A model generated the notes under the pieces. The model searched no databases. It had not been told where the DNA came from and was given only the letters and a program-made list of their open reading frames with translations. From Bispira polyomma (taxonomy: Eukaryota), in contig OZ287751.1 in NCBI GenBank assembly GCA_965649765.1, forward strand, positions 84,320,001 through 84,384,000: 64,000 nucleotides of DNA, given 5' to 3'. Positions 6,492 to 55,844 of the stretch are shown here, piece after piece. The position numbers and the translations under genes were made by a program. The first letter of the stretch is position 1. Every line of letters starts with the position of its first letter.

Positions 6492-9400
6492 CTACAGTGC
6501 ATGTTCGTCTGGTACAAAGCCGGCACAATGTAACGGAATGCGGGCAGATGACTGATATGCATCTTCAGATGTGTCGCTTGCATAAGGATCCAAGCCATTA
6601 AAGGTATGACCATGAGAAGAGAGGTGTGATGTGGGAACGAGGTAAACTTCGCTGTATTTCAGCTCATAAGATTTGGCACGGAATTGAGAACCCAAGAGCT
6701 TCCTTGCCCACAGACAGGTTTTGTCCAAAGAGGTTACAAGATACTTTTCCATTGCTGTGTGTTTACTACCATCCTGTTTTACGTACACTAAATCACCCAC
6801 TTTAACATCAGCCTTTGTAGCCAACCTTCCACTGGGTAGCTTGCTAAGGGCACTAGACGGGTGGTTAGCCTTACGATTTGCTAGTAGGCGAGTATCTGCA
6901 AGGGTACCATCAGAGAAATTCAACTTATCGCCAGTGTAATTATCTCGTTGGAAGAGGATTTCTTTTTTACTGAGACCGCGATTGCGCACCCGGGTATTTA
7001 ATGTAGCAGTAATAAGAGCTAACTGATTCACAGGGCCACCTTCAGCATTGGCTATTTTCAATTTCTTTTCAAGTTCTTGAATTGCCTTTTCAGCTACAGG
7101 GTTTTTATTCTTATTTTTAACACGACCAACTTCATGTTGAGATGAGAGAGAGAGCAATCTTCGAGTAAACTGTTGAATGCAGATGCTCCATCAACACGAA
7201 TAGTACAGCCAGAGACATCTTTGAGATCAGTAGTTGATTCAATAATAGCCGTGCAGAGGCTGTTGGCTTGTTCATTTGAGATAATCCTTGTGATAGTGAA
7301 TGAAGAGAAAGTATCACGTATGAGAAATATTTTTTGACGGGCGCGGCACAATACATCACATGCAAACTGTAAACCTGGGCGAGTAGGTGAGGAAGAGGTA
7401 GAAAAATCTTCCATCTCTCGAGGTAATGAAGCAATAGCTGCACACTGAGCACACTGGTGAGATACAATGTAAATTTTTTTGTCCATATCCAAGGCAAAGA
7501 AGTACTGGTGACATAACTTTGCTAACTGAGATTTCCTTTGGTGATGTAGCTTGCAATGCAAAGCATTGAGTAGGCCTGCGAGGACATGATGTGGTATAAT
7601 GGTGAGTGATCTTGTCGGAGCAAAAGGAAGATCCTTTTTCACCACTAACAAGCCTTCATGGGCTAATGTAGCAACTCTGAGGTAGCGCTTGACATCTTCG
7701 ATCTTGCTACTTTTCCGATTTGGCCTAGTACCTTGAGCTAAGTGAACATAGGTGCGGCGGAGTGAAAGGCAATCCTGCTGCGTGGCATTCCAGGCAGCAC
7801 TTGATAGAAATGGCATTTGAAACCGGCCATTAATTATGTCGGAGATAACCAGCTTGGAGACTGTGATATGGGTGCAATCGTGAATGAATCGGCAGATTTG
7901 ACAGTCTTGAGTGTCACACTCCATTGGGTGGCGAGAGTGGTAGTCGGCGGGGAGATTTTTAGCTCCAGATATGTTCAGTAGGCTTACCTTAAAGCGACTC
8001 AAGGTGGACAAGAACGTGGACACGCGAGCACTTGAAGAGAACTCACCTCGACACAGCTTTCCATATGCCTGAACACAGTGGCGAGAATTGGTAAGGATTT
8101 GGACTACATTTTGAGATTCCAGGATGTATGCAGCCCAGTGGTTTATGGATGCACTGATATCTAGAGCTTCAATTTCACATTGTAACCAGTTGCGCTGATG
8201 TTACTTAAGCCTGGCTGAGTAGAAACCACCAACTAGCATTTGCCCGTTTGAACAGAACAGAACCGATTCCGCCAATAGAAAAGACACCATCATTGGTAAT
8301 GACCAGTCTGTCTTTTGGAGATGGTATCACTACTGTACGGGTGTCTTTGAGAGATGACTGAGCAGCAGCAAAATTTGATGACAGCTGACCATTCAATAGT
8401 TTTATGGGATTCTTGGCTGGCGGTAGCAGACTCCAGAGGAGAAAGTAGTGTGGAATGCATGCCTTAAGGTGTTTTAATGCTCCACACCATGAGCGGAGGC
8501 CTTTGACAGTCTTGGGCGGGGTGGCCTTGACTAATAGTATAATTTTGTGCGGAGAGGCCTGTATGCTCCCTGCAGACCAAATCCAGCCCAAGATAGTTGT
8601 GGTAATGGGACAAATGCAAGATACGCTCCCAGTTGACTAGAAGTTCAGCAATGGAGTTGGCTCCTGTGTAGAGATCATCAGTTATTTTCATGACTTTGCC
8701 TTGATGCATGAGGTCACCTATTACTCAAGATATGAGCTCATCTAGGTGCTCTGTAGAAACAGGCATACCCATGGCTGCTCGTGTGTAGACTCTCAAACCT
8801 TTAAAGCGGGTGAGGACTCCTAGGTACTTCATTGAAGATTTCTGCATTGGGAGCTGAAAAAACTGCTTAGTCAAATCAGTTTTGATGATATACTTGTGAC
8901 CAGCCAAAGAGCGCAGAACATTGTCAGTGGTGGTGATACACGATGGAGAGAGTTTTGTATATGAACCAATATTGTTGAAGGCGGTTACAAGGCAAAAGTC
9001 ATGTTCTTCCTTTTTGACCAAAAAACTGGGTGAGACATATTATATTTTAACTCCAACGTCTTCAGGATAAGCAAGAACGCCCAGTTTCTTAAGGTCATCC
9101 ATTTTGTCTTGCAGCAATCGTAACTTTTCAAAATTATAAGAGGGAAGCCTGGCCTTGGTGGGAGGAGAATCAACTGGGCCCATATTGATGAATGCACGTA
9201 CACGGCCAGAAGCATCATTATGTTTGTCAATATGCTTGTTGAATACCTCATCATAGTGCACATTGAGACGTACAAACAAGTTTTTTTCTGAAGGGGTCAA
9301 TTGATGATCAGGGTCTATATCAACAGCAGTAGAATGTCTGTCATTGATGCAACATGATGTATCCTGTGGATTAGCTTTGGTGCTATCCCTTGGGGAGGTA

Positions 9401-10080
9401 TAGGGCCTCTGAATATTTTGAGTGTCAGTGGAAAAATATACCTGAGCAACGTGTTGATGTTTCCTGATGGCTATAGGGTCACGGGATAGGTTAGCAATGC
9501 GTATTTTACCATGTACTGCAGAAGTGATTGCTGGTTGTAACCACAGGTGTGTGTTGGTGTCAAATCTGGGTTCAACTGCTATTGTAGTTGTATCTGAAAA
9601 TTCTAGAGGAGCTTCAACCTCTACAAAGTCTCCAGGAAACAGCGTCTGATGGGTAGGGGCTCTCAGCAGAAACGATTGTGAACGCCTTACTTCAGATGGG
9701 GTATTGTCTTTGCGGTTTGATCTATATGAGATAGTGTGTTTCCCCTGAATAATCATCCTGTCAGTTGGTATATTATTGTCTCTCATGGATGGGACACCAG
9801 CTAATATGTCACAATCCAAATCTGCTACAACAACTGCTTGCAGGTGAAATGATAGGGTCCCTATAGACAGTTCCACATGAACTTCTCCAAATGCTTTCAT
9901 ATGTGTCTTGCCGTCAGCTTGACTTGCAGAATGTAGTGTAGGAGATATTGGCATCTGTAATTTAACAGCAAAATCATATCTGATGAGTGAAGAGGTAGCA
10001 CCAGAATCACAAGTAATGATAACAGGAGTGTGATTGTAAAACTAGGAGATGCTGAGGTAGTGACTTTTTTGACTGTGGTA
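6492..10080 (-). pseudogene. Gypsy pol (protease, RT, RNase H, integrase), frameshifted
   Basis: Protease ITCDSGATSS near 9990-10020; RT YIIKTDLTKQFFQLP, YTRAAMGMP and KITDDLY; RNase H ITNDG and NLPADYHSRHP; integrase H-H-C-C (LHCKLHH...CAQC), FACDV, VDGA and AEKAIQE. Confidence 0.92.
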
Positions 10081-10106
10081 TTGTTCCCCTGACCATTATG
10101 GCCTAG

Positions 10107-11044
10107 TCATTCATCTCCTTCCAAGTCTAGGTCGTCAAGCTCTACGGAAATGCTTTCTTCATCCTCAGGGGATGAGTGTGTGTCTACTTTGAATAATTTA
10201 AGCATATCCCTTTTTTTAGCTTTAGAAATGTAATCACATTGGGAGACAGAGTGGCCAAAGTAAGGTCTTTTTTCAGCTTTACAAATTCGGCACTGAGGCT
10301 TTGAGTTGGCTGACTTTAGGCGTGTTTGAGGACCATACTGAAGTCGCTTCTTGTAAGGAGGAGGCCTTTTCTGTTTGTATGGAGTGAAGAATCGAGATGC
10401 CTTGACCTCGTCATTACGTAATTCCTCTAGAAAACCATCCAACGCATCTGCAATTTGCGGCTGTAATTCCTTCAATGTCATTCTCTGTAAATCGTAAGCA
10501 AATGTGCGTTGCACCAGTGCCGGAAGAGAGGGGTGGATGAGCTCCATCTTTTTCTGGTTTGGTGTCAATATGTTTTAGCTTGGAGTCCTTTCGCAGCAGG
10601 TTATCTTGCAAGTGTGCAAGGATGCGTTGGTATAACTTCTCCGGTCGTTCACCATCCTCCCATGTAATGGAAGAAAACTTCATAAACTGTGTTTTAGACT
10701 GTTGGAAGCCATAGTACTTTCTGATGAATTGCCATATGCTATCTATACTGGTACTGTTACGGACAATGTCAGTAATGAGGTACCCACTGTGTAATTAGGC
10801 CCAACATTTGCTCCAAGTGGGCAGCTTTCTGCTCCTTTGTCAGTCCCTCCCGATTGGTAAAGCCCCTAGAGGGATTGTCTGAGGTCATTCTCAGCCAAGT
10901 AGCACCAGTTTCAATGAATGGTTTATATTCCACATCCCTAGAAAGTGTATAAATAATATTGTGCTTCCAGCTGGTAAATGAAGAGAAGGATTCATCTTAA
11001 GTAAGCTTCCAGGGCTTGGGACCACATGCGTGTGATGTAGCCAT
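10107..11044 (-). pseudogene. Gypsy gag, disrupted
   Basis: ATG at 11044 (MATSHACGPKPWKLT*DESFSSF..WKHNIIYTL), then ERPEKLYQRI and a C-terminal zinc knuckle CRIC..H....C. Confidence 0.85.
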
Positions 11045-11955: not shown

Positions 11956-14900
11956 ATGCTTGTAATAATTACCATAGTTGTTCTTTTGCAGCTGACATTA
12001 TATGGACAATTTGGCATTGCAGAAAAAGGTAATTGTATAATTTTTCAGTGCTTATTAATACTTTGTTTTACAATACAAGCAATAAATAAGCTTATTTATT
12101 AAGCAACAGCATCAATTTATTTTTTATAAATGTCTTAGTCACAGTTGTTTCTTCATTGACAGAAATTACCCAGGTGCATTCAATCCGTTCCAGGTGCACA
12201 CCATTTTTCTAAAAAAGTTTAACCATTACTGTTCATAGAGTAACCACATTATGATTTATTTAATATATATAATATCATAATCTTAATAATTCAGGAACAC
12301 TGTGAATAAATAAAGCTATAAAGATAGCAATTTTCACTTGTTGCAATTTTAATTGTGAGACATTAATGCAAATTTTGTACATTGCTGTCGACTTATTTAG
12401 TTTAATTGGTTTGGCAACAATAGAAGATATGACGCATCATCAATGAGACAGGGCACTGATTTCAATGATAAAGATAAGACATTAAGGTAATTGTCGACAC
12501 ACTGTCTCCTCAAAGGGCTGTTGTGGCATAGAATTTTGAAATTCCAAGACAATGGGAAGAACCTTCAGTGATTACAATATATTTAATGTCACTTGTTGTC
12601 AAGCCAATTCAACTATGCGGGATGGGGCCTCAGTGTTGAATATGTTGATGCTTGTAAACAAAACTGCTCAAGTCTGGTTTATTTTAATATATCAACGTAT
12701 TTAGTCATTCCTCCAAAGTCAGAACCGTATTACCTATTAACAACCTTCGGTTTATCTTGATCTTGACAGCATCTTTTTATTAGATTAACAGATTCCTGTC
12801 AGCATTTCAACACTCCTTGACTAGCTATCTAAAATAGCCTGAGGTATAAACATCTTGCCATGCTTCCACACATGCAATATATATGTTCCATAGCATTAGG
12901 CAATAAGTATAGATTTTTGCACTCATACATATTATTCAACATTCAACAAAGAAAATGTACTTTGCCAGAGGGATAAACATCTGAGCAAGTTTCAACAGCG
13001 GAATGATTTATATTGTACTGCATCAAACGTATAAACCATAACGTTTTTGTCCACAAAGGCATATATGTACTTAAAAATTAATGTTTTGGTCTCACAGTTT
13101 AGTGGTTTAGATTTTACAACCTTTGCCCACACAGAATGTTCAGACACCCCTGGGGCTTGGTGTGGTCAGCCAGCCTTTGATGAATGTCAGAATGGCTACT
13201 GGAACTATACTATAGACTGTGACCCATTCCTGGATGTGTGCTGCGTCCCCAACACCCCAATCACCACTACCACAGACCTCCCTACTAATGAGACTACTAC
13301 TGTCTGGCCAACCTCTATCCCTGGAGGTATTATTTTTAGAGCACTGCCTAGGGTAAACTCTAAGCAAAAGTCTGTTTTTCCAAGGTTTAAATGATGTATC
13401 ATTATCTTCTTTATTACACTAGTGTTATCTTATGTTAAAATACCATGGTCAGTATTTGTCAAAGGTCTTAAATTCAACTCAGAAATATATAAAATGGATA
13501 TAAAGGCTAAGTTACTATATCTTTTAATATTCTACATCTTTAAACTGAATTTAAATTAATGGTAACGTGTCCAGGGGTTTCGCCATTGATAAGGTAATCT
13601 ACAGATGTTGTATGTCACTTGAACCATTGGCTGAAGTTTAGGACCTTCAATAAATACAAGCTTTGGGAATGAGTTTACTTTAAGTTTGAAAATTTATTCA
13701 GCCACGTTTGGAAAACACGCCTAAATACTGCATAATACATGAAAACAAATTTGTGCAAAGTGTATGTACGTATTTGTGCTGTTTTAAAAATGATTGGGCT
13801 CAAAGTTTAATGCGTTATAGCTGCTCATTTACTTTTTGCATTTAAAAACAAATTTAGCTTTCATTTTTATAGTCATTTCTAGAAATCATTGGACAACATA
13901 TGATCCTATTTTGTATAAAACAAGTTCCAAGTCTTAGCAAATAAAATTGTTCAAAACAATACACAATACTATAAGACCAAAATTTAAGAATCAATTTTTG
14001 GTGTATAGAAAGAAAGATGTTTTAATTAGAGTGCCACATGTAACGGCCACACCAGTAAAATATTATGTAACAAAAACAAAATAATATAAGTTATGTATCA
14101 TTAACAAAAAAGACATAGCACAGCCAGCACAACTAACCAGGGCTTATGAGGCACTAGAAGAACAACTTATGAATATCAATATATGTTTACTTGACTTATA
14201 TTGATCGTACAGAAATGTTTAAAGAATACTTTTAATTGTTCATTGAAAGACAGAGTAAACCAATGAGCATGATTATTGTTCTTAGTTCTGTTATGTGCAT
14301 ACAAGGGACAGTGAAAGATAAAATGTATCCTTTCATTGACATTGGGATTATACCAACGTCCTATTTCATTTTGTAATGACAGTAGTGTTTAACCTGATTT
14401 TAAGTTTGGTGCCAAAATTATTTTTTCACGACCTTTGTCTCTGTAGTTTTTACATTTTTAAAATATACTGGGGACATATTATTAAATTCATTGTATAGGT
14501 TCAGACCTTTAAAAATGTTTTTCTTACATTGCAGTCAGAATACATTTATTAAATTACCATTTATAGATAAAGAATCAAAAATTCAATAATGGATAAACTA
14601 TAGTAGATAGAGCTATTGATGAATTTTATCAATTAGTACACTTTACCAGTAATACGTATTTTCCTCAGTTTACATAACATGGATGTCCTGTTGACCAGAA
14701 ATTTTTTGAGCTTCGATAAATACAGCATGTGGTTTTTGGTTAACTGGTTGTTGGTAATTTTAAAAGAGTAAAATGTGGTCTTCATTACTTGGTTTTGGCC
14801 TAAAACCATGTGGGTCTTCTGCAAAAATATGATTATTTTATAGAAAATCTGACATTCTGTAATTTAGTATAATTGTAAATAATTGAATCACAGTTGACAA

Positions 14901-17900
14901 TAAATGTATACCTCTATATCAGGTTGAATACCGTTTTGGTTTTAAAACTTCTATCACCAGAATGTGGTGTGGGTCCGGCACTAGACCACTATATTGTGGG
15001 AGGCGAGGAAGCAAAAAACCACTCCTGGCCATGGATGGTCTCTTACCAGTTGGACTACTTTGGCATCAATGACTGGCAACATTACTGTGGAGGTAGCTTA
15101 CTGACTGACCAATGGGTACTCACCGCTGCCCACTGCTATGTCAAGTCCGGCGAGTGAGTAGGGTTTACATATATTTGTAGTCTGTACTTACCTATTTCCG
15201 AAAGTTTATTGTCCAGAGTTTATATGGTATGCATACGTATTAAAGTAAATTTACTTATTACAACACTAAAAATTTTATTTCAATCTTCATTATTTACAGA
15301 ATTTTACCTACTAGCAGTCATGTTATTTGGTTTGTCACTATGGCCTATATTGACACTCATATATACATGGGTTTGAACTCAGCTTGGAATTCTAAAATAT
15401 CATCAGTTGTTGCCTAGAGAACTTTCTCTTCAATAAGGGAAACAATCATAGTTATTGGTGCTGGTTTGTCTGTGATTGTGATTGTGCAAGACAGTGAAAA
15501 CTAGCATTTTAAATCCTAGAAAATGGGGAAATACTGCACTAAATCAAGCTCTAAATAGAATAGACCTATTGAGGATTAGTAAAGTAACTTATAAGTATGG
15601 AATAATTAGGTACTATTTGTAGGACAATTAATATGATTAGGTATTATTTGTCGGACAATTAATATGAACTACTTACTATTTAAAAACCTGCATGGAGATT
15701 CTACATTTGCTGTTTTGGTATTATTTACTTGGATATGTAAACATAATTGACTTGATAAAGATACAAATTACATTAAACAGGTGTCATTTTGTTAAACAGG
15801 GATGACTTTCAGTACTTCCGGATTGTTCTGGGAATGCATGACAAGACAGAACCAGCACCATCTCAGATCATCATGCCAATTGAAAACATTATATATGTAA
15901 GACTTATTATGAAGTTTTAAAGACAATCATTGATGATATACTTTCTTCAATATTTTAAATGGTGTTTCCTATAATGAAATAAATAATCAAAAGATAATAT
16001 TGCAAATGGCACAATTTTAAATAGTGAATTCACCAATAGTAATAAACAAATAAGTAGTGAGCAATGCAAATAGTATTTTCACAGATATATATTTGCCTGA
16101 CTGGCTCTGTTAAATATAATGCCTTTCCTCCCTACCATAGTCATGTTAAAAGAAGAATTATTACTGCCCATGATAACATAAAACACATATTGGTGCTGAC
16201 CTATTAGTGTGTATCTTTGCAATATAACTTGTATATAATAAATAATATATATAGATATATACATTTTCTGTCCCTGTAAACTATACATTGACTTAGGAAC
16301 ATCCATGAACCTTGCAATTCTTTGTTGATAACTTAAGCATCCAGAATATGACCCTGAAGTAGATGGTTCACCAAATGACATAGCACTAGTTAAGATGGCA
16401 GAACCAGTGGAACTGATTAAAGAGATATCACCTATTTGTCTGCCTGATTATGAAGAGCAAGACTATATGGATGAGAAATGTGTGATTACTGGCTGGGGAC
16501 TTACTAAAGGTCAGTTAAAACATAGTTTTTGATTTTTTTTTAGTTTAAGACAGTTTGACCAGCAGTTAACTATATCTTCCAAAATTTGTGGTGACCAAAC
16601 ACTCTATACCACTGTCAATAACTGTTAGTGTATGTACAGATGTATGTGAGTAGTGCAATTTTACATTCTCACCCGATTTTTTGCTCCTGGACGGAAATTG
16701 TAGGATTCGGAAGCTGCTAATCGTGCATCGCAATTGCAGTCTGATACATGTGAACAAATAAACAAAAAATTTGAAGGGAGAAAAACATTGTTGTCAAAAT
16801 TCGGACATCTGATTCATGCCTACATACACTTACATGTTTTACTATCATGTTGTGCTATTTTGCCATGTTGATATCTTTGATCCACATCCTTGTTACCTTG
16901 TTTTGTTGAAAAACCTACCTACAACATATTAACAATATAATATGATTTATACACACACAGCCAACGGAAAATAATAATAATAATCTGATAATAATTTCTT
17001 TGATATAGGTTCTAGTTAAATCACCTGTGTATATGTTTGATATACTGTATCAGCTTGAGTCAAATAAAATGTTTCCTATCGACTTGAAAAGACTTAATTT
17101 TGATCAAATCTATGGATACATTTGATTGACAGGTACTGGTGATGAGGATAAGTTGAACCAGGCTGAATTACCTGTAATCTCTAATGAGGAATGTGACTAT
17201 AAGTGGGAGGTAGGCTCTGGGAGAGTGGACCTAATCAAAGAAAATCACATATGTGTGGGTAATGGTGTGCCTGGAGCATGTAATGTAAGTACTTAGTTAT
17301 AAAGCTATATAGTTTAGGGGCCTTGGTGATGTAGTAGTCGCACTGTTGAATCTTGCCTCTGTGATTGTAAGTTAAAATGTTTTCTCTGGCCTGCATGTAA
17401 GAAACTTAGCTGTTGACCTGTTGCTTAGTTGGGGTTTAATGTGGCGTTCAACTCATTTTGTGCCATATCACAACTGGCAGTTTGTATAGATGTGATATGC
17501 GACTCTGCAAACCGGAATAATGCTATATCAACAGTGAAAATTCATAAATATTGTCCCTGAACATGCACAGTAGAGTAATATTTGTATATATTAATTACAA
17601 TTTTCACCAAATTATGGTTATCTGTTATAAAATTAATTTATGTTACGTTTGATAGGTGTCATATTTTACTGCCATCTGAGTTTCAGTTAGCTTCTTGAAA
17701 CATAGCTTCACATACCAATTAAACCTTATGTATTCAAGTTGTTAATTACTAAATAAGTAAGCTGATTAAATACATTAAAGGTATATTTAGTATACTGGGC
17801 TATTTCAGGGAGATTCTGGTGGGCCATTGAATTGCTATGTAAATGGCACCTGGCAACTTGCTGGTGCCACATCATTTGGAGCAGCCGGGTGTGAGGCTTT

Positions 17901-17973
17901 GGAGGCACCCAATGTCTACTCAAGAATCTCTCACTTCCTAGACTGGATAGAAGAAACCATAGCAAACAACTAA
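11956..17973 (+). CDS. Secreted S1A chymotrypsin-type serine protease zymogen with an N-terminal 6-Cys module, copy 1 (7 exons, 347 aa)
   Basis: Exons 11956-12028, 13135-13326, 14961-15153, 15800-15896, 16338-16509, 17133-17284 and 17809-17973. All introns are GT-AG with compatible phases and there are no internal stops. Signal peptide [22 protein letters not shown]; motifs IVGG, LTAAHC, NDIALV and GDSGGP; AATAAA at 17985. Confidence 0.95.
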
Positions 17974-18270
17974 ATTGTATTAACAATAAAGCTCATGTTT
18001 AATCAGCAGAGTTTACTCTAACTTTCTAATGCCTCCCTTTTCTGTTTCAAACTTAAGCTCTATTGCAATATGTTGTACCATTTTTACACTCCAAGATGCT
18101 GCTGCTTCTTAAATCTCGAGTAAAGTGGTATTCATGAAACGGTACCAGAAACATCAAAGATGTCACAAATGTAATTTTTTCTTTTGTTTCCCCATTCTCA
18201 CATTTATTATTTACGTTTGCTAACATTTCATAAAATCACAAATGGCATAATGCAAACCCAAACATATGAG

Positions 18271-18955
18271 TGTGACCGAGCCAGGTAGAAGAGGTATTTC
18301 CATCTGCACAAAAATATGTATTTTATATTTAATGCTTATAACGTTAAATGGTATCAAATGTTTTGTCTTATTCCTTTCGTTGAAATGGTTAAAGAATTAA
18401 AAATATCCAACCAGTAATAAGGAAGTTCTCATTCTAATTGAAACGTCCACTAACTCTGTTAATTAAGAAATAACAAACCATGATATACGGTAACACGAAG
18501 GCAATATCAAGAGTGGTAAAAATTACTGTACATCAAAGGTTTGGAATCTGTCATTCCGATTCTAAAATGACAAACTAAATATGTACATGAATTCTACTGT
18601 ATTTAGAGGAATATTATAAGTTACAGGAGGAATTATTTTTCTCTGGGCATCAATCCTATTGATAAAAACGGCTCATGTGTATATGGTGAATTTTACCAAG
18701 GCTTTCGTCCAATCAGAATCACAAATATGCAGTTCAGGAATGAACACTTAAAATGGACAACTATTGATAGGAAAAATTGTTGTACAAGGCATTTATGTGG
18801 GAATCATGTCAGTTATTTGAGGTAGCTCATGTTTTACAGTAATATTACATAGCATATATCATGTTGAAAGTGACTTCAAATAAACCCAGATCAGTGCACA
18901 TTGTAGGTCACTGTAGACACCCTAGTTAGCCCGGCTGTCACTAGCTAAGGTCATA
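18271..18955. mobile_element. Possible old non-autonomous DNA transposon
   Basis: Imperfect inverted ends TGTGACCGAGCCAG and CTAGCTAAGGTCATA; lies between the two duplicated units. Confidence 0.3.
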
Positions 18956-20536
18956 AAAGTGGCACGAGGCATTCTTAAAATTAATTAGTTTTTATGTACG
19001 CCCTTTAGTCTCATAAGTGCCTAAGGATATATATGATTGACATAACCAATTGATGATGCAGCTGGTAACTGTTTCAGATCAGTAAAATCTGATTTGTTAA
19101 TTGCTACCTGTTGCTATGGTTTCACTTACCTGTACTCTTGTGGGGTGGGGGGGGGGGGGGGGGGCACTCAGGTACAAATCAAGTGAAAAACTTGTACCTA
19201 ACTTATAAATTTCATAAAATTCTGGGTTCCTAGAGCAGTTATTCATTACTAGTCAAATCAATACAAGGAGTAGTGTAAACTTTAACCAGAACAAAAATAA
19301 TTTCAAAATAGTTTTCTAAATGATGATCCCAATTGTTGCATGTTATACATCATTACATATATTCAGTTGCTTCACTTTCTTTGTTTGAGCCTTAAACTTA
19401 AAACCGATTTGTTCCACAAAACATACAGACATACAGTCTTGCCAAGTAATATTCCAACTGGGGAAATAAGTTGGCTTAGAACTGGACAGGTCAAGGTAAA
19501 GGTCAATCAAGAGGTAAAATAGGATTATGATACAAGAACCAAACCAAAAAACAATACAATGAAAAATAACGTTAAAAACTGTATGTTTAAACACGTTTGG
19601 GCATATCTCTAAACTACATAACAAGTATTTATAATATTAGTAGGATTAAAACACACAATATCTAGATATGGGGGGGTGGGGGTGGGGGTGGGTGGGGGGG
19701 GGTGGGTGTAGAGTTATCTCACAAACATTTTAATATGAACTAGTAATATAGGTAGTGACTATTACACGCTGTTTCAGCACCAAGGGCCGATTCAAAACAG
19801 CACCCTATTCAAAAGGTGCCATTTTCACGCAAAAATAATAATTATCTATAACGTACTCAGATTATATTAAAAATTTGTGTGGAAATATTATGTATATTCC
19901 AAAAAAATTGTCTGAGTAACTCATTTCAATAAAAATGGATTCAACTTGCCGCATCTTAAATTGGTACTTCTGTTTGTAATTTTTTTTTGGCTACCATCGT
20001 CAATGTGTTTTTTTATTTACTTTTCAATTCAAAGTATATAAGTAGAAGAATTAACCTATTAACAATAGTTATATGTTTTATTTGAGTGTAGAATAAATTT
20101 CCAATGTAATATCATATCATTGTGGGAGTGATAACAGATGTAAAATCTTATCAGTTGTATGTGATTATACTTAATGTCAAATTTTAATTTCCATAGCATT
20201 TTGTTATTAAATCAATAAAACTGGAAATGTGATGCATCACTAGCATCATTTATTACACATCAAGTTAAAATATTTAAAAGATTGGGCAGATCCAAGTGTA
20301 TATTTAATATATGTGAAGACATCTTGCAGTAACTCAAGAATCGCCAGTAATAAAGACCATATAAGTCAATGTAATACAGATAACATTACACTTTGTGTAA
20401 TCTCATTTGTGTTATGGATAAAATATGTTAAATCTCATGACAGTATAATATTCTCGAAAGATAATTTGGAGAATATTTTCGTCTGGAGCTAATGTTTAAC
20501 TACAAGTCTATATTATACTTTGATGCATGACTAGCA

Positions 20537-23500
20537 ATGCTTGCAATACTTTCTAAACTTGTTCTTGTGCAACTGGCATTATATGGAGAATTTGGCAATG
20601 CAAAAGGTAATTCTACAATTGATTAGCCCTTGTTCATACTCTGTTTTACAGTTACCAATATATAAGCCAATTTATTGAGCATTAGCATCAATTTTATAAT
20701 GTCTCAGTCACATTTGTTTTTTTTCATTACATAACTTTCTTAATTATCCAATGCATTAAATTCGTCTGCGAAAATTACCCAAGGCTCATCGTGACTTTTA
20801 GTTGATTCCAGGTGGACAGCATTTGCTAAGAAAGTCTCTTTGCTAGAAAGATTTTTATGAAGTCATCTACTTTATAGATTGATATAGAACATAGCATAAA
20901 GCCAAGTAAATCTTAAAAATAAAAAATTAAAATGGAGTAAATACAATTTCAGTTATAACGAAATTCTGTTAGAGAAGAAAAATATTTATGTATATGACGT
21001 GGGTATATTTGAAAACCATTTTCGGCGATACTTGTAAGAACTGATATATTTCTGGAACTAAAGCCGGAATGGGATTGTCCCCATTGTTCATGTGTAGACC
21101 TTGCGACAGTATGACAACACCCTGGAGACACAGCTGAGACAGTCATGACCACAATGTTGAGGCAGTATTGAGACAAAGATAGGACAACAGTACAACAAAT
21201 GGCGACAGATAGCGCTTTCATTTGTTGCATGACACTCATGATACCACTGTGATATATTCATGCGATTTTTGTACGATATTACTTTCACTCAACTGTTACC
21301 TACTTTGACTGGTTTGGAAACTATAGAAGACAATGATGCGTCATCAATGGCACATATGGTACCAACTTCAAAGACAAAAATGAGACAATAAGGCGTTTGT
21401 CTTCACACTACCTTCTCAAAGGGTTGTTGTGACAATCAAGAGGAGGCAACTATTGAAGACAAAAAAAGACAACAGAAAGACACCAATAAATTGATGGTGA
21501 CTTGTTGCCTAGACAATTCACCCATGTGGGATGGGGCTTTTGTGAAATATGTTTATGCTTGTTGAATCTAAACAAAACTGCTTAAGTCTGGTTTATTTCC
21601 ATACATCAAAGTATTTAGACATTCCTCAAAAGTCAGAACCGTATTACATAGAAACCAACCTGAGGCTGATCTTGTTCTTGTCAGCATTTAGTTCATTTTA
21701 TCAGATTAACAGGTTCCTGTGAGCATTTTCAACCTTTCTTCACTCTTTTTCTACATTGACTCCTTTCAAATAGCCTGGGGTTCAAACATCTTGCCATGCA
21801 ATAATTATGTTCCATAGCATTATGCGTAAATATAGATTTTAGCCCTCATACATATTATTCAACAAAAATGTGTGTTGCCAGAGGGATAAACATCTCTGCA
21901 AGTTTCAACAACTGAATAATTTCTATTGGAATGTATCAACCATAAACTATATCTTTTTTGTCCGCAAAGGGTAATACTCAACAGTAAAAACTTTGGTCTT
22001 AGTTTAGTGTTTTAGATTTTACAACCTTTTCCCACACAGAATGTTCAGACACCCCTGGGGCTTGGTGTGGCGATCCGCTCTTTGATGAATGTCAGAATGG
22101 CTACTGGAACTATACCATAGACTGTGACCCATTCCTGGATGTGTGCTGCGTCCCCAACACCCCAATCACCACTACCACAGACCTCCCTACTAATGAGACT
22201 ACTACTGTCTGGCCAACCTCTATCCCTGGAGGTATTATTTTTAGAGCACTGCCTAGGGTAAACTCTAAGCAAAAGTCTGTTTTTCCAAGGTTTAAATGAT
22301 GTATCATTATCTTCTTTATTACACTAGTGTTATCTTGTGTTAAAATATCATGGTCAGTATTTGTCAAAGGTCTTAAATTCAACTCATAAATGTATATAAT
22401 GGATATAAAGGCTAAGTTACTATAACTTTTAATGTTCTGCATCTTTTAAAACTGAAATAAAATTAATGGTAACACGTCCAGGGTTTTCGCCATTGATGAG
22501 GTAATCTACAGATGTTGTATGTCACTTGAACCATTGGCTGAAGTTTAGGACCTTCAATAAATACAAGCTTTGGGAATGAGTGTACTTTAAGTTTGCAAAT
22601 TTTTTTAGCCACATGGCTGGCTTTATTATTTTGAGTTGGAAAAAAGCTTAAATACTGCACAATCTGCCAGATTATTGTAATACATGAAAAAAGATTTGTG
22701 CAAAGTGTATGTATGTATTTGTGCTGTTTTAAAAATGATTGAGCCCAAAGTTTAATGCTTCATAGCTGCTTGTTTACTTTTTGCATGAAAAAAATTTAAC
22801 TTTCAGTTTTATAGTCATTTCTAAAAATGATTGACACATATATGATCTTATTTCGAATAAAAGAAGTTTGAGTCTGAGCAAATAAAATTCTTTGAAACAA
22901 TACTCGTTACTTTTAGACCAAAATTTTAGAATCAATTTTTTTGGTGCATAGAAAGAGAGATGTAATTTTTAACTTGATTTTAAGTTTGATGCCACCTGCT
23001 AAATTATTCTTCATTACCTTTGTGTCTGTGGTCTTTACATTTTAAAAATAAACTGGGGACATATTATTAAATTCATTGTGTAGGTTGCGACCTTTAAAAA
23101 TGTTTTTCTTACATTGCAGTCTAAACATATTTGTTAAATTAACATTTATAGTTAAAGATTTAAAAAGATTTGTTAAATTACCATTCATGGATAAACTATA
23201 GTAGATAGAGTTATTAATGAATTTCATCAATTTGTACACTTTACCAACAATACATATTTTCCTCAGTTTATATAACATGGATGTCATGTTGACTTGATCA
23301 AAAATTCTTTGAGCTTCAATAAATACAACAAATTTAACTGGTTGTTAGTAAATTTAAAAGAGTAAAATGTGGTCTTCATAACTTGTTTTTTGCCCAAAAC
23401 CATTTGGTTCTTCTGCAAAAATATGATTAATTTCTGGAAAATATGACATTCTGTAATTTAGTATAGTTATAAATAATTTAATCACAGTTAATAATAAACG

Positions 23501-26500
23501 TATACCTCTATATTTTGTTGAATACCAGTTCGTTTTAAAATTTCTATCACCAGAATGTGGTGTCGGTCCGGCCCTAGATCACTATATTGTGGGAGGTGAG
23601 GAGGCAAAAAATCACTCCTGGCCATGGATGGTCTCTTACCAGTTGGACTACTTTGGCTGGGATGACTGGCAACATTACTGTGGAGGTAGCTTACTGACTG
23701 ACCAGTGGGTACTCACCGCTGCCCACTGCTATGTCAAGGCCGGCGAGTGAGTAGGGTTTACATATATTAGTAGTTTTAATATACCTATTTCCGAAAGTTT
23801 ATTGTCCAGTGAGTATGGTATGCATATGTATTAAAGTAAATATTACTTATTACAACACTAAAAATGTTGTTTCAATATTTATTATTTACAGTATTTTACC
23901 TACTGGCAGTCATGTTATTTGGTTTGTCACTATGGCCCATATTGACACTTGTATATACATGGGTTTAAACTCAGCATGGGATTCTAAAATATCATCAGTT
24001 GCCGCCTAGATAACTTTCTCTTCAATAAGGGAAATTCTAGTTATTAGTGCTGATTTGTCTGTGATTGTGCTTGTGCAAGACAGGAGAACTAGCATTTTAA
24101 ATCCTAGAGAATAGGGAAATACTGCACCAAATCAAACTCTGAATAGAATACGCCTATTGTGGATTACTAAAGTAACTAAAAAGTTATAGATTAATTAGGT
24201 ATTAGTTGTAAACAGTAGGACAATTAATATGAACTACTTACAAATGAAAAACCTGAATGGAGATTTTACATTTGCTGTTCTGGTCTTATTTACTTGGATA
24301 TGTAAACATAATTGACTTGATAAAGATACGAATTACATTAAACAGGTGTCATTTTGTTAAACAGGGATGACTTTCAGTACTTCCGGATTGTTCTGGGAAT
24401 GCATGACAAGACAAAACCAGCACCATCTCAGATCATCATGCCAATTGAAAACATTATATATGTATGTTCCAAGTACATTATTTTTCCTTTTGTCAATACT
24501 TCAGATATGTAATTAATTTTTAAATGAGTATGTATGTTAAATGCAAGTGCTGTAATATGAGACAAGTTGAGAATGTGATAAAATAGTATTGTCAATTTTT
24601 GATCACATTTTCAATATTACACATATATCTAAGACTTATCATGAAGTTATATAGACAATCATTGATGATATACTTTCTTCAATATTTTAAAAAGTGTGTC
24701 TTATAATAAAATAAATAGTTAAAAGATAATATTTCAAATGAGACAATTTTATGCCATAGTCATGTTAACAGATGACTAATTACTTCTCTCTGAGCAAACA
24801 GGAATATAATAATATGATACACATATTAATGCTGACCTATCTCGCAAATCTGTTATGTCCAACTGCTGCCTTCTAGTTATTGTTAAACACCACACCTTTT
24901 CGTAAACTATTGTCATATTGATTTTTTACTGTGTCTTTATAGTATGCCTCACCAAATTATTTAAACCTTCTGTCATTATCGCTCACATACCTTGTTCCTC
25001 CATGGGAGTAGCCAGGATATTTCATTTGGTACTGACAAATTGAACCAATATATTAGGTTGTTTTTTGTCCTACCAAAAAATTCAATTGGTGGGGGGGGGT
25101 GGGGGTGGGGGTTGGGGGGGGGGGGTTGGGGGGTGGGGGGGGTGGGGGGTGAAATATAGTATTATAAATCTATATTACTACTAAAACAAACAGAATAAAG
25201 AGAATTTTTTTTTTTTTTCTAGTCATTAAATTGGTGGGCCTGGGCGTACTGGCGTTAACGGTAGCTACGCCCCTGTGCTCGCATACGTTTTTCTGTGAAT
25301 TTCGCATCCCCGTTTCCGCTATGTGACTTTCTCAAACATGTTTTTGGTCCTATAACTGTTTTACATACAATATTATACATTTTGCATTCTGCGACTGTCT
25401 GGCTGTAATTTGTTACTTTTTTTTACATTTGTGACTGTTTCTTGAATTTTTGAGATGTGGAAGTACTGTTTCGTACTGCTGCATTGCATGGTTTTGGCCG
25501 GTGTCAGAATACATGCATGGAGCGGCTGCTCACCTTCCAATACACTATTTCTTGACCAATTTGAACTTGGCCCATCTTTCCTTGCCTCCTTGGATAAGGT
25601 TAACACCTCATTTTTATGCTTTTAGCTACATATAACCCGCCGTCCTAACCCCCGTGTAAATAGTGTATGAATTCCTCTGCACTCTCTGCGGGGACGTCTG
25701 CATAAATCCTGGCCTCCAGCATCTATGCTTAAGATAGGTGCGTTTAACGCCCGTTTCTTACGGAACAAGGCGCCTGCTGCTATTGATTTGATCATAGCTA
25801 AGGACCTGGATATTGCTGCCATCTCTGAGACCTGGTTCAGCAGTAAGGATACCACATCTTTTCTGACTGATATAATTTCTCTGGGTTACAAATTCTTTCA
25901 GTTTCCCAAGTTGCAAAAACGCGTAGCAGGAGTAGGCATTTTTGTAAAAAATGTTCTCTCCTGTGAAATTCTAAAAAACAGTCCTATTTGTCTTTTGAAT
26001 CCATCACATGCAAAATTTCAAATGGTTATCACTCATTCCTGGTTTCCTCTTTTTACTGCACACCCATTGCTTCTGTAGCTACCTTTACTCAAGAATTTTC
26101 CGAATTTTTTGAGACCCTCAAGCTTCTTCCATCTGAAACTATCATCCTTGGCGATTTCAACATCAAGGTTGACATAAAAAATTCCGTAACAAAAGATTTC
26201 AACAATTTTCTCAACAATTTTGGTTTTTCACAGTTCATAACAAGTCCAACCCACATCCACAATGACATACTTGATCTGGTAATTGCAAGACCAAATTCAA
26301 ACTGATGGGATTTTGGATCATATAGCAACCTTTGCGTATTTAAATTTGCCGGTATCTGCCTCACAAAAACCTTGTCTGATAAAATACAGAAATATCATAA
26401 AAAGCATGATAAATTCAGAGACGACATCCTTGCATCAAAACTGATGAAACATCCATGCAAAAACGCTGAAGGCTCTGCTTACAATACAATAACAGCCTTT

Positions 26501-29500
26501 CTACTATCCTTGAAAAAGATGCTATGTGGGTATCTAAAACCCTTCTCCCAACAAACCCCCTTAAATAAACCAATGTCGCCATTACAGAGTCTAAGAGATG
26601 CATACGCCAATTCGAGCATCAATGGTGTCATTCTAAATCCTTGTTCGATAGAGGCTGTTACCGCATCGCCATAATTTCAACAGGCAAATATCTAGTGCCA
26701 AAAGGAAGCACTATGATTCTATCATCAGTGACAATCAAGACAATCCCAAAAGGCTATGTGCCTCCATCAACAAAATTCTGCATTGAACATCCGGGAAAGT
26801 TCTCCCCAAAAATCACTGTCTTACATTTTTAGTGGATGAATTTGAAAAAAATTTTAATCAATAAAATCAGCAACATTCGTGACGATGCATCATTTATGTC
26901 CTCCAACGCCTGGGTGTAAGGTTTCTAACCTGTTCCATTTCTGGACACTCTCCGAGCAGGATGTTCTATAACTCTTATTAAAAACTATTAAGCTCCTATT
27001 AAATCTTGTGAACTAGATCCTATCCCAGCAGTTATTCTAAATCAATGCTTTGATATTCTAGTCACAGACTGCAAATGTAACTCCCTTGATAAAAAAAAGG
27101 GCTCGATAAGAACCCGATCAAAAACTACAGACCGGTGTCAAACATCAGCTTTGCCTCAAAAGTTATCGAGAAAGCTGTACCACAACAAATTTCTGGGCCT
27201 CTACATTTTAGTCTTGATACACATCCTCTCAGCACTGTCATCAATAACCATAATATAAAGCACCGCATGTATGGCATGACACTCATGTCTATCTCTCTAG
27301 ACCCTCAAAATGCAAATAAAAATATTGACCTACTCACAGACTGTCTGTCTGCTGTCCAGGTGTGGATGAACTACTCCAAACTAAAACTAAACCCAGACAA
27401 AACGGAATTCATTCTCATTGGAAACAAGAAAACAGTGAATTCTTAAAATCTTTGTTTCCCATTTTCCTTCTGGGAAAAAACATTAAAATAATCTGAAACC
27501 ACCTGTCAATGGACACTGTGGCTAACACCCTTGTGAGCAGCCGCCTCGGCTACTGCAACTCTCTTCTGTTTGGAGTAAACAAGTCCAGTCCATTTAAAAC
27601 TACCTATGCAGGGTGATTTTTTGCCTGGGTGGTCGCACAGACATAACTCCTTACCTAAAATTTCACTTGCTCCCCATTACCTCTCGAATTTTGTTCAAAA
27701 TACACGTTACCACTTTTAAGGCTGTAGTCACTTAACAGTCTTGCTTCCTTTCTCTCCTTCAGTAACCGTAAGAGAGGCAACAGACTCTCTGTTTCTTCGG
27801 TCATACCCATCAGGAAGTTGGGATCCAGAGCTTTCTCCATTGCAGCTCCTTTGTTATGGAACAGTCTCCCAGTTGACCTCAGATCAATTGATACACTCAT
27901 CGGTTTTAGAAAAAAGCTTAAAACCTATCTTTTTAACCTTGCCTACCCACCTTAGATTTTCTCGAGCAACGCTCCTACTTTTTTCCTTATCACTTTGCTA
28001 TGCCCATGGACTTTACAATCTTATCAATGATTCTGCTGTTGCGCTTTAGAAAACGCCTAGCATCAATAAAGCGTGTTAAAAATTAATAATAATAATAATA
28101 ATAATATAATTGTGTATCTTTGCAATACAATACATATATGACAATTTTATATATATAATTTTTGTAACCCTACAAGCTATGGAACAAGGAACAAGTATAT
28201 TTATATCTCTAAGGCATCAGGCACATAACACGATTGGTATAAAAATATCCCACACATACCTTTCTCAGTGGGGTGTAGGACCGAACATACCATTGATTAC
28301 ATTGATGGAATTCCAGCAAATATAAGTATCTCTTGAAATACAATGATACAAGAAACATACTAGTTTAATTAGCCTAGTTGCATTTTATGTCCCTGTAAAC
28401 TATACATTGACTTAGGAACATCCATGAACCTTGCAATTCTTGTTGATAACTTAAGCATCCAGAATATAACCCTGAAGTAGACGGTTCACCCAATGACATA
28501 GCACTAGTTAAGATGGCAGAACCAGTGGAACTGATTAAAGAAATATCACCTATTTGTCTGCCTGATTATGAAGAGCAAGACTATATGGATGAGAAATGTG
28601 TGATTACTGGCTGGGGACTTACTAAAGGTCAGTTAAAACATAGTTTCTCATAACTGTTTTAGTTTAAGACAGTTTGACCAGCAGTGAACTATATGTTCCG
28701 AAATTTGTGGTGACCAAACACTCTATACCACTGTCAATGACTGTTAGTGTATGTACACATGTATACGGCCTACAATATAAGACGTCTAATTTGCGAAGTG
28801 AGATTTTTTTCAACCTCTCCACCCCCCCTCACACACACCCTCCTTATATAAAAATTATCACCCAATTTTTTGGCTCCTGAATGGAAAATTTTGGAAGCCT
28901 CTAAACGTCGCAATTTCCAATCTGAAAAAATAAGGAGAGAAAAAATTGTTGTCGCAATTCAGACATGTGATATTGGAGGCCACAAGCATGTGTACATACA
29001 CTTACATGTTTTACTATCATGTTGTGCAATTTTGCCATGTTGATATCTTTGATCCACATCCTTGTTACCTTGGTGTGTTGAAGAGCCTACCTACAACATA
29101 TTAACAATATAATATGATTTACACACACACAACTAAGGAAATATAATGTATATATGTATTTGTTTGATATACTGTATCAGCTTGAGTGAAATAAAAACGT
29201 TTCCTATCGACTTGAAAAGACTTAATTTTGATCAAATCTATGGATACATTTGATTGACAGGTACTGGCGATGACGATAAGTTGAACCAGGCTGAATTACC
29301 TGTGATCTCTAATGAGGAATGTGACTATAAGTGGGAGGTAGGCTCTGGGAGAGTGGACCTCATCAAAGACAACCACATCTGTGTGGGTAATGGTGTGCCT
29401 GGGGCATGTAATGTAAGTACTCATAAGACTATATAATTTAGGGGCTTTGGTGATGTAGAAGTAAGGCTGTCGAATCTTACCTCTGTGGTTTAGAGTTGTA

Positions 29501-30965
29501 ATCTTAGCTTTGCCATACATGTGGAAAAGTTGTCGGTAGAAGTGTTGCTTTAGTTGGGGTTTAATGTGGCATTTAAACATATTTGTACCATATCAAAACT
29601 AGCAGTTGATTGGTGGAGGGAACTAGAACAGAATAATTTTAAGGTCAACATTTCTGTTCTGCGAATTAGTCTGAGGCCAACTTTCACACAATCCAGTAAT
29701 GAAATTCAAACACACAACTGCAGAGGTATAGACAGAGAGCCAGGGTACAGCTGTTGACAGCAAGTGGTTGAAATCTTGACGAACTAATCTATACTAGTTT
29801 CCTTCACCAGTAAGTTGGCAATTGTAATGCAATACAAAGATGCCTCAAACAGTTGGAGGCTACAATAATGAGGAACACTATTAAATGGTAGTGAAAAATG
29901 ACAGAGCATTATGTCACTCTGCAAACTAGAAAAATGCTATATAAATAAGAAGAGTGAACTATTGTAGATATTGTCAATGATCACACACTTGTAGAATCAC
30001 TTTGGTATATATTAATTACAACTTCTATCTAATTATCTAATTTGTGATAATAGTTTATAAAATTTATTAATATTGCATTTGATAGGTGTCATATTTTACA
30101 GCCATCTGAGTATCAGTTAGCTTCTTTAAATATAGCGCCACATACTGATTAAACCTTTGGGGTTCCATTATAGTCGCAAAGAAATACAAATATAGATAAT
30201 GTATACATTTATTTCTAAGTCATTACTAAATTATACACACACAACAAGTTATAACTAAATATCAATTTATGTTCACAACCAATAGATTATTAGCTTATTT
30301 CAAATCAAAACATAGGATATGACTTTACTTTCAGATGATGTAAAATATATCTTCAGATGACATATACTTTTTACTTTGACCAGGAATAAGCAATGTATGT
30401 TACATTGCTGTGTTTGGTAAAAAATGGCAAACCAATTAAATGCTTTGTTTTTCCCCCATATATTGGGTTATCCACTATTAACACAGGTAAAAAAGGGATG
30501 GTGTTCAGCACCTAAATGTCATCATTCAAATTGTATTTTAAAGAGTAAGTATTCAATTTTGGTAGTTACGAATATGAGATACACTGCAGTAATTGATAAC
30601 TTTATTTCAGGTCATGTAACTTTTACATGTTGTAGAATCATTTACAGGATTGCTTAAATATGAAGGTCTTACATATCTTGATGACAGAAGATTAAAATGG
30701 GGTACAAATTGGGTCTTCCAAACCTGAATTTAGATAGTTTATTTAAGTTGTTATTTACATCAGTTAATTAAACATATTAAATGTTTATTTGTTATTTCAG
30801 GGAGATTCTGGTGGGCCATTAAATTGCTATGTAAATGGCACCTGGCAACTTGCTGGTGCCACATCATTTGGAGCAGCCGGGTGTGAGGCTTTGGAGGCAC
30901 CCAATGTCTACTCAAGGATCTCCCACTTCCTAGACTGGATAGAAGAAACCATAGCAAACAATTAA
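20537..30965 (+). CDS. Secreted S1A chymotrypsin-type serine protease zymogen with an N-terminal 6-Cys module, copy 2 (7 exons, 346 aa)
   Basis: Exons 20537-20606, 22040-22231, 23554-23746, 24365-24461, 28456-28627, 29261-29412 and 30801-30965. GT-AG introns, open frame and intact triad; exons 2-7 have the same lengths as in copy 1. Confidence 0.95.
24841..28110 (+). mobile_element. L2/CR1-group LINE in intron 4 of protease copy 2, decayed with internal deletions
   Basis: APE motifs [23 protein letters not shown] and [11 protein letters not shown]; RT pieces NYRPVSNI and [15 protein letters not shown]; C-terminal [25 protein letters not shown]; (AAT)n tail at 28085-28110. The empty site is visible in copy 1 near 16204. 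Confidence 0.9.
25001..25275. mobile_element. hAT-like MITE nested in the LINE 5' region
   Basis: Inverted ends CATGGGAGTAGC (degenerate) and GCTACGCCCCTG with an internal poly-G tract; no clean target duplication. Confidence 0.65.
29440..29810. mobile_element. Old SINE remnants in intron 6 (shorter homologue at 17317-17485)
   Basis: Degenerate tRNA-like head GGGGC.TTGGTGATGTAG joined to an inverted SINE-like tail TTGGGGTTTAATGTGGC. Confidence 0.4.
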
Positions 30966-42062: not shown

Positions 42063-42886
42063 CTACTGTGGTAGTAATGTCCTAATGTCCTGAACATCAT
42101 CTGGAAGTGGCTCAGCTGGTGGTAGACCCAGTGTGTTATTGTCCAGTTTTGTTTTCAGGTCCGAGTTGTTGTAGATGGAATAATTCAATGTTGAACCGTT
42201 GCCACCGATGTTTACAAAGATGAACCGGTAATCGACCACACCAAGCAGGAAGAAGAAGCCTGTGTAGTTGTAATACACCGAGCCAGAGTTCTTAGGAGCC
42301 TTGATTGCAATGTGTTTTCCGTTGATTGCACCCACAGCATAAGGAAAGTTCCATTTGGTTGCAAATCTGTCACTCACTGCACGCCAGGCATCTGGAGTTG
42401 TGGGTAGATTCACCAACTCAGCACTGTATTCTTCCAATATGGCCTTGCATGTCTCTTTCACAAAAACAGAAATGCTGTTGTGGGGCACTCTGAAGGCATA
42501 TCTCAGGCTGTGGTAGCTGTTACCCGATGCTGGATACCTCAATGTGATGGCCAACTTCATACCAGGCTGTAGGGGAGGCCTCCAGTTGGTGTCCTTTTTG
42601 GCCAGGCGGGGGGGGGGGGGGGGTTATCCTGTCCTGCAACTCTCGGAACACAGCTGGCTCCATCCTCAGGTAGTTCACCATGTGATTTTATCTCCAGCTC
42701 CACCATAAGGTTGCCATAGTCACCAAACTGCAGGCGCCTGCTGATCCAGGGCCTCACCCAGTACTGCCTGTCCCTTTTTCGCCTCCTCCTCCTGAGGTAG
42801 GCCAACAACACTAGGCCTGCTGCCTGCTGCCGATGCCATCTCGCCGCCATGATTTGACCTACTGCTGCTGGACCAAAAAATGCCAT
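42063..42886 (-). pseudogene. Harbinger DDE transposase, family B, frameshifted, C-terminal half deleted
   Basis: YWVRPWISRR, KLAITLRYPASG, WNFPYAVGAINGKHIAI, YYNY.GFF and VDYRF. Confidence 0.92.
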
Positions 42887-47500: not shown

Positions 47501-47779
47501 AACTACATTCATATGAATAGGTTACTGTTATATTGATCATTTTAACAACAAATACAGCCTCTAAACAGTAAACTTGCATAACTATGTGAATAAAACGGTT
47601 CTTTTTCATTTGTTTCAAGAAATCATATCCTATACACAATGTACAAAAAAATAAAAAAATATAAAGCCAAAAAATAAAGTGATTCATCAGAGTTACTGGC
47701 TGATCAAGTGTAAGCCAGAGATACATAACATGGTCTTGTGGGTTTGTCAAAAACATACAAATGTAAAAAAAATTAAGTT

Positions 47780-53280: not shown

Positions 53281-53294
53281 TGGTGTACCTGAAA

Positions 53295-55826: not shown

Positions 55827-55844
55827 TCTAGTTTTTACTGGCTG

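Follow-up and report, generated by a model that had tools for sequence, protein, structure and literature searches.

The locus considered here raises the question of what a short acidic six-cysteine module is doing at the N-terminus of a chymotrypsin-type protease, and whether it should be regarded as a defensin, as a relative of the arthropod clip domain or as something of its own kind. It lies in a stretch of 64,000 nt of the Bispira polyomma genome (assembly GCA_965649765.1, contig OZ287751.1, positions 84,320,001 to 84,384,000 of the forward strand), which we call the window and from whose first letter all positions are counted. A preliminary description, made from the letters alone, had placed tandem seven-exon proteases at 11956-30965. 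This architecture stands, with the correction that the span holds two genes of seven exons each, arranged head to tail on the plus strand (gene 1, 11956-17973; gene 2, 20537-30965), both of which code for an intact secreted S1 protease. Taken as a whole, the data suggest that the products are probably secreted zymogens of the elastase type that carry a shuffled, tethered accessory module with a defensin fold. The searches reported below were made exon by exon or with the stored sequences of relatives.

The module is encoded by exon 2. In gene 1 this exon (13135-13326) has 192 nt, lies between an AG acceptor and a GT donor, and is symmetrical, with phase 1 at both ends. It is entered one codon ahead of Cys1 and encodes a 36-residue module with the pattern C-x7-C-x7-C-x10-C-x6-CC (codons 13137-13244), which is followed by a Thr/Pro stalk of about 27 residues (13245-13325) with an NET glycosylation sequon. 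Exon 2 of gene 2 (22040-22231) has the same length and phases, and it encodes the same module as gene 1, except that DPL replaces QPA in loop 2, followed by an identical stalk. The splice sites, phases and translation agree with what had been read from the sequence beforehand, namely a symmetric phase 1-1 exon of 192 nt with this cysteine pattern and a Thr/Pro stalk ahead of ECG and the Y|IVGG activation site. A third complete paralogue with the same seven exons and the same DHY|IVGG site is present on another chromosome (G000:C3:89168000-89187999); its module has 35 residues, as loop 3 is one residue shorter, and its introns are much longer. An orthologue that shares this exon structure and activation site lies on a contig of 3.5 Mb in another assembly (L007). 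Exon 2 is open in the three paralogues and in this orthologue, and the pairwise ratio of nonsynonymous to synonymous substitution rates (dN/dS) among them is 0.12-0.44, in the module and the stalk alike. Because the exon is conserved in the third paralogue and the orthologue, shows dN/dS values in this range, and gives a profile that finds relatives with expectation values (E) down to 9e-18, the observed pattern is not due to chance. Judged from these sequences, exon 2 is a real coding exon of the exon-shuffling type under purifying selection, in agreement with the earlier proposal of an exon-shuffled module on a protease.

Exons 2 and 3 both start with AATGT after an intron of phase 1, and exon 1 joined to exon 3 is in frame. 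Skipping of exon 2 would therefore keep the frame, regenerate Glu-Cys-Gly and yield a plain chymotrypsinogen-like precursor, which is the hallmark of module insertion into an intron of phase 1. The same arrangement could be taken to mean that exon 2 is skipped or is a pseudo-exon, and that the genes make plain chymotrypsinogen-like enzymes. We regard this as highly improbable, as the exon has good splice sites in both genes of the window, is open in the four genes mentioned above with dN/dS well under 1, and occurs in the same architecture in annotated proteins of other species and on an intronless, transcript-like contig. This contig of 1161 nt (L006), from a sequencing run of another species, contains a single open reading frame (ORF) for signal peptide, module, stalk and protease. 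Its protein (P0009) is collinear with exons 2-7 of gene 1, with exon 1 unaligned and the match to exon 4 of gene 2 too low for the cut-off. Skipping of exon 2 in a minor alternative isoform is possible.

The two copies of exon 2 in the window differ in an uneven manner. Six of their seven nucleotide differences lie within 12 bases (13164-13175 compared with 22069-22080) in the Cys2-Cys3 loop, where gene 1 has GQPA and gene 2 has GDPL, and elsewhere in the exon, as well as over about 190 bases of the intron downstream of it, the copies are the same or almost the same. This pattern resembles gene conversion with a small patch that escaped, or else a micro-conversion or complex mutation. GDPL is common to gene 2 and the L007 orthologue.

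A profile built from the three paralogous modules, when run against 1.84 billion representative proteins, gave 16 matches at E<=0.001. Twelve of them were real, and those with a named organism belong to the annelid Owenia fusiformis. More Owenia proteins and a protein of the bryozoan Watersipora subatra ('elastase-1-like') came from a second search and a local hidden Markov model (HMM) scan, as did, with lower scores, proteases of Lingula, Dreissena and Haliotis. Besides 'elastase-1-like', the database names of the relatives include 'chymotrypsin-like elastase 2A' and 'fibrinolytic enzyme isozyme C'; in general, the databases label these proteins only as 'uncharacterized' or 'elastase-like'. 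The comparison indicates that this is an unnamed module family, carried by proteases of annelids, bryozoans and brachiopods and, with weaker support, by those of molluscs. The setting had been supposed to be non-arthropod, and the organism-named relatives are indeed lophotrochozoans. The module had also been put forward as a candidate for a novel system. It has no Pfam family match; it is not unique to this genome but is spread over lophotrochozoan proteases, often in a form with eight Cys. No paper that specifically describes a defensin-like or clip-like protease module in lophotrochozoans was found in the literature examined, which fell short of most subscription journals.

Most of the close relatives have the eight-Cys form, C-x2-5-CC-x5-CG-x6-C-x9-10-C-x6-CC. 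The subfamily of the window lacks both the first Cys and the second member of the CC pair, and their joint absence suggests that these two extra Cys pair with each other. The module is aromatic-rich and acidic throughout the family, with a net charge of -1 to -9 in 20 of 23 modules. The modules of the window have net charges of -6 and -7, and that of gene 1 has no Lys or Arg and six Asp or Glu over its 36 residues, so that the absence of basic residues and the presence of several acidic ones, already noticed in the window, turn out to be part of a family-wide acidity. The Owenia proteases contain one or two copies of the module. In one of them (P0017, 552 amino acids), a module is followed by about 120 residues of mucin-like STTQA repeats, a second module and the protease. 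A predicted ORF on an ENA contig (P0013, 296 amino acids) consists of a module and a long Ser/Thr-rich mucin-like region, with no protease. The architectures of these two proteins hint at an association of the module with mucin-type glycoproteins.

The fold of the module was predicted with AlphaFold2 from an alignment of 23 sequences. The model has a predicted local distance difference test (pLDDT) score of 88, with the five models at 86-88, and is all-beta and three-stranded, with strands at 8-10, 20-27 and 34-38 and the Cys3-Cys4 segment as a 10-residue hairpin. It supersedes an earlier run with the three paralogues only, in which one model reached a pLDDT of 69 and the other four about 46, and with which Foldseek gave no match. 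The predicted strands of the module are placed at Cys2, ahead of Cys4 and at Cys5-Cys6, as in beta-defensins such as human beta-defensin 2 (hBD-2). The exhaustive structure search VIA returned 22 chains at Z>=2, of which 17 are defensin-fold peptides (Z 2.1-3.2), and no clip or hevein chain was among the 22. The defensin-fold matches comprise crotamine (Z 3.2), platypus DLP-1 (2.7), the C-domain of oyster big defensin (2.6), AvBD11 and hBD-2/4/6, together with further platypus DLPs, crocodile and consensus beta-defensins, alpha-defensins, SCRiP1 and the sea anemone peptide Ueq 12-1. In the Atlas structure search two beta-defensin clusters were matched with template modelling (TM) scores of 0.53-0.54. 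The comparison with defensin and clip folds that had been recommended at the outset thus favours the defensin, and we consider it likely, but not certain, that the module forms a three-stranded sheet of the beta-defensin type.

Comparison at the sequence level did not connect the module to a known domain. Stray sub-threshold hits aside, no Pfam family, CLIP included, matched the modules of the window or the 23 aligned modules at E<=10. The stray hits were Defensin_beta on the Dreissena module (E 0.013 and 15.9 bits, compared with a cut-off of 21; E 0.075 for the trimmed module) and Meleagrin (E 1.5 on the full-length protein P0066; E 0.027 for one sequence in the module alignment). Neither Defensin_beta nor Defensin_big matched the modules of the window in the Pfam scan, and a profile search of the whole genome found no Defensin_big (PF14862). 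Searches of PDB sequences with the module, both as a single sequence and as a profile, gave chance matches only, and a word-index search with the module region of P0009 returned only P0009 itself. A match to an already described protease accessory domain would have spoken against a new module, and the Pfam scan of the 23 modules gave none. Hevein/CBM18 (PF00187), which came to mind because of the CC-x5-CG core of the eight-Cys relatives, was rejected, as neither a Pfam match nor a hevein structure among the matches was obtained. A search of the genome with CLIP (PF12032) gave three matches of 22-23.5 bits, just above the cut-off, with stop codons; the two that were inspected (L011 and L012, on C2 and C9) lie in retroelement-like ORFs and are spurious. 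Profiles of short Cys domains need care on this genome.

The remaining exons of gene 1 build a complete S1 zymogen around the module. All introns of this gene are GT-AG, and the phases are consistent (0/1/1/2/0/1/0). Exon 1 (11956-12028) provides the start codon and a hydrophobic signal peptide of 24 residues, and ends in phase 1. Exon 3 (14961-15153) continues after a split Glu codon with a propeptide of 10 residues, the Tyr|Ile bond (14990-14995), the IVGG N-terminus and the catalytic His in AAHC (15131-15133). After exon 4 (15800-15896), exon 5 (16338-16509) contains the catalytic Asp in NDIAL (16377-16379) and the SPICLP motif, whose Cys is the expected Cys122 partner of the propeptide Cys. 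Exon 6 (17133-17284) encodes the wall of the S1 pocket, with Gly at position 189 in GACN by hand alignment, and exon 7 (17809-17973) contains GDSGGP with the catalytic Ser (17815-17817) and the stop codon TAA.

Gene 2 has the same set of exons, and all seven are open. Its exon 1 (20537-20606) encodes a signal peptide of 23 residues and ends in phase 1, exon 3 (23554-23746) contains the same DHY|IVGG activation site as gene 1 and the catalytic His, and exon 4 (24365-24461) is followed by exon 5 (28456-28627) with the catalytic Asp, exon 6 (29261-29412) and exon 7 (30801-30965) with the catalytic Ser and the stop codon. IVGG and the triad motifs AAHC (His57), NDIAL (Asp102) and GDSGGP (Ser195) are present in both genes. 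The Pfam Trypsin family (PF00089) matches exons 3, 5, 6 and 7, although exon 6 alone lies just below the cut-off (18.8 compared with 20.6 bits). The solved structures nearest to the catalytic domain are pancreatic elastase (1bru), plasmin, factor XI and chymotrypsinogen C (1pyt).

The catalytic region has ten Cys at chymotrypsin positions, among them the Cys of the propeptide ECG and that of SPICLP. They would pair as in chymotrypsinogen, with a Cys1-Cys122 bond between the ECG and SPICLP Cys, and the six Cys of the module would pair among themselves. Since the propeptide Cys and the SPICLP Cys stand at these positions, the module and stalk are predicted to stay covalently on the active enzyme through Cys1-Cys122 after cleavage of Tyr|Ile-Val-Gly-Gly. 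Vertebrate chymotrypsinogen and the chymotrypsin-like elastases (CELA, CTRC) share the CGV-type start of the propeptide, the ten Cys placed for five disulfides including Cys1-Cys122 and the intact triad; the worm protease differs from them in having the extra exon for module and stalk and in activation after Tyr, not Arg. Aligned by hand, the S1 pocket shows Gly189, Gly216 and Asn226. An open pocket of this kind would suit Tyr or Leu at P1, and as the residue at P1 of the activation site is Tyr, it is plausible that the enzyme activates itself or is activated by a paralogue. In the known cascades, P1 is Arg or Lys. The suggestion of an immune, clotting or secretion cascade made in the preliminary description found no support; pancreatic elastase and chymotrypsin C are what the catalytic domain comes closest to, and P1 is Tyr. 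Only the analogy with clip leaves room for an immune or clotting cascade.

This analogy leads to the question of homology. The module could be truly homologous to the arthropod clip domain, though very divergent, and represent a short 'proto-clip' on proteases of an extracellular zymogen cascade of immunity or clotting in which the module contacts an activator or a cofactor. Arthropod clip-domain serine proteases (PF12032, PF18322) such as easter, PPAF and the horseshoe-crab proclotting enzyme are secreted zymogens with an N-terminal six-Cys module ending in CC and a linker Cys that tethers it to the S1 domain, and the proteins studied here follow the same layout, from the signal peptide through the module, a Pro-rich linker, the linker Cys and the activation site to the S1 domain. 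The module thus occupies the position of a clip, with a predicted interchain bond, and more than one module on a protease, as in Owenia P0002 and P0017, recalls the dual-clip proteases. In the clip itself the six Cys are reported to pair 1-5, 2-4 and 3-6, and the fold mixes alpha and beta elements, the segment from Cys3 to Cys4 being long and partly helical, as in the structures of PPAF-II and PAP-2, whereas the AlphaFold2 model of the module is all-beta and no clip structure was among the 22 structural matches. The Cys3-Cys4 segment has 10 residues, predicted as a strand, compared with 22 in ant clip domains, and the whole module has 36 residues compared with about 50 from Cys1 to CC in the ants. 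When the module was compared by hhalign with one clip domain and with 13 ant clip domains, Cys2-Cys6 could be aligned in register, though only with large gaps, and the probability was 0.7-1% with a shallow clip profile that contained ants only, since a search with the ant clip region had retrieved just 13 closely related ant proteins. In a language-model feature search with the module of a relative, the CLIP (PF12032) and CLIP_1 (PF18322) clusters ranked 1 and 3 with scores of 0.78-0.80; a score of 0.80 is reached by a third of shuffled proteins, and we treated the result as a lead only. An Atlas feature search with the module from the window itself yielded no usable match. According to the literature, arthropods and molluscs have clip proteases, which mature into two-chain enzymes joined by a disulfide (PMC8611957), and the Cys of the clip are arranged much like those of the beta-defensins (PMC11335235). 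With a P1 Tyr instead of Arg or Lys, an elastase/chymotrypsin-like catalytic domain and no CLIP match in any of the 23 modules, we consider clip homology together with a cascade unlikely. Of the clip or defensin likeness proposed earlier, the clip-like layout and the beta-defensin-like predicted fold remain, and a relationship to CLIP at the level of profiles was not found. A more far-reaching form of the idea, which we regard as distinctly doubtful, sees in the module a minimal, beta-defensin-like version of the clip, with lophotrochozoans having this where arthropods have the full domain; an exon of the big-defensin/beta-defensin type would then have been shuffled through phase-1 introns into chymotrypsin-type zymogens before the protostome divergence, and the arthropod clips would be its elaborated descendants.

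The likeness to defensins invites the opposite reading, that of an exapted defensin with a continuing role as a host-defence peptide, either released from the protease or displayed by it. With the beta-defensins and the C-domain of the big defensins (trans-defensin fold; PF00711, PF13841, PF14862) it shares the six-Cys framework ending in CC and the predicted three-stranded antiparallel sheet, and oyster big defensin is among the fold matches. It differs from them in being acidic and not cationic, in being fused to a protease and not a free secreted peptide, in the extra N-terminal Cys pair of many relatives (eight Cys in total) and in having no significant profile match. Loop 2 has 7 residues, compared with 3-5 in the beta-defensin consensus. 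Big defensins and beta-defensins have a phase-1 intron just ahead of the exon for the Cys domain, as is the case here, and reports of big defensins cover sabellid polychaetes, bryozoans, brachiopods and bivalves (PMC7203481), the groups that carry the module. The intron position is not specific to defensins, and phase 1-1 is the commonest arrangement for shuffled extracellular modules in general. An anionic peptide of this fold is also on record. The sea anemone toxin tau-AnmTx Ueq 12-1 (PDB 5lah) has a beta-defensin-like core with additional disulfides, including an N-terminal one, and weak antibacterial activity (PMC5450702). It was the best small match ranked by Foldseek, without significance (TM 0.56; VIA Z 2.6, root-mean-square deviation 1.8), but it is a free cnidarian peptide with 10 Cys, and the likeness seen is structural. 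No dibasic or other release site lies between the module and the stalk, and the module is predicted to remain tethered. With the net charge of the window modules, the lack of Lys and Arg, the consistently acidic family and the missing defensin profile matches in the window and the genome, a surviving host-defence peptide seems very unlikely. In view of the acidity of the whole family, a membrane-active defensin function would also be unlikely.

The preferred reading remains a secreted elastase-type zymogen with a shuffled, tethered module of defensin fold. A phase 1-1 exon would have entered the gene of a chymotrypsin/elastase-type S1 zymogen, between the exon for the signal peptide and that for the propeptide, and would have added an acidic, aromatic-rich three-disulfide module of 36 residues and a Thr/Pro stalk of about 27 residues that is probably glycosylated. 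The module is best read as a functional analogue of the clip and other N-terminal protease modules, and not as an antimicrobial defensin. As the most likely function, we tentatively propose, at somewhat less than an even chance, that of a non-catalytic binding or targeting domain on a mucin-like stalk, which would hold the elastase-like enzyme on a glycan, mucus, matrix or protein partner. Several points weigh against this picture. Foldseek with the 23-sequence model gave nothing significant, and the structural scores are weak in absolute terms (Z 2-3.6 overall), which is usual for domains of 40 residues and would also fit a common small-sheet arrangement. The language-model search ranked clip clusters first and third, and for a role at mucus or matrix the indications are the stalk, the architectures of the relatives and the digestive-type catalytic domain.

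Intron 4 of gene 2 measures about 4 kb, compared with 441 nt in gene 1, and is enlarged by a non-long terminal repeat (non-LTR) retroelement fragment at about 24750-28380; it contains endonuclease-like ORFs at 25725-26305, more ORFs up to about 28050, and a G-rich low-complexity tract near 25100. Just upstream of gene 1, at 6492-10568 on the minus strand, ORFs of 304, 309, 221 and 153 amino acids resemble the gag, protease and integrase of an LTR retrotransposon. Further ORFs of 239, 208, 477 and 353 amino acids at 52429-56906, also on the minus strand, resemble an element of the tyrosine-recombinase type (DIRS/Crypton-like), and other ORFs similar to transposases or long interspersed elements (LINEs) lie at 1836-2426, 42063-42560 and 44753-47756.

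N-terminal disulfide modules, for example clip, kringle, apple and CUB, set where and when extracellular serine proteases act. A module of this kind tethered to an S1 zymogen is known as a class of finding, and the lophotrochozoan module family described here is undescribed. Our analysis defines an unnamed short acidic module without a Pfam match and with a predicted beta-defensin fold, which is conserved on elastase-type proteases of several lophotrochozoan phyla. It offers a testable case of a defensin-type fold as a tethered, non-cationic accessory domain of a protease and, given the shared Cys framework, a handle on the old question of the kinship between clip domains and beta-defensins. 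If the module were indeed a minimal form of the clip, it would provide a concrete evolutionary link from defensins to the regulatory domains of invertebrate protease cascades, and it would predict that zymogens are regulated through a defensin fold in annelids, bryozoans, brachiopods and molluscs.

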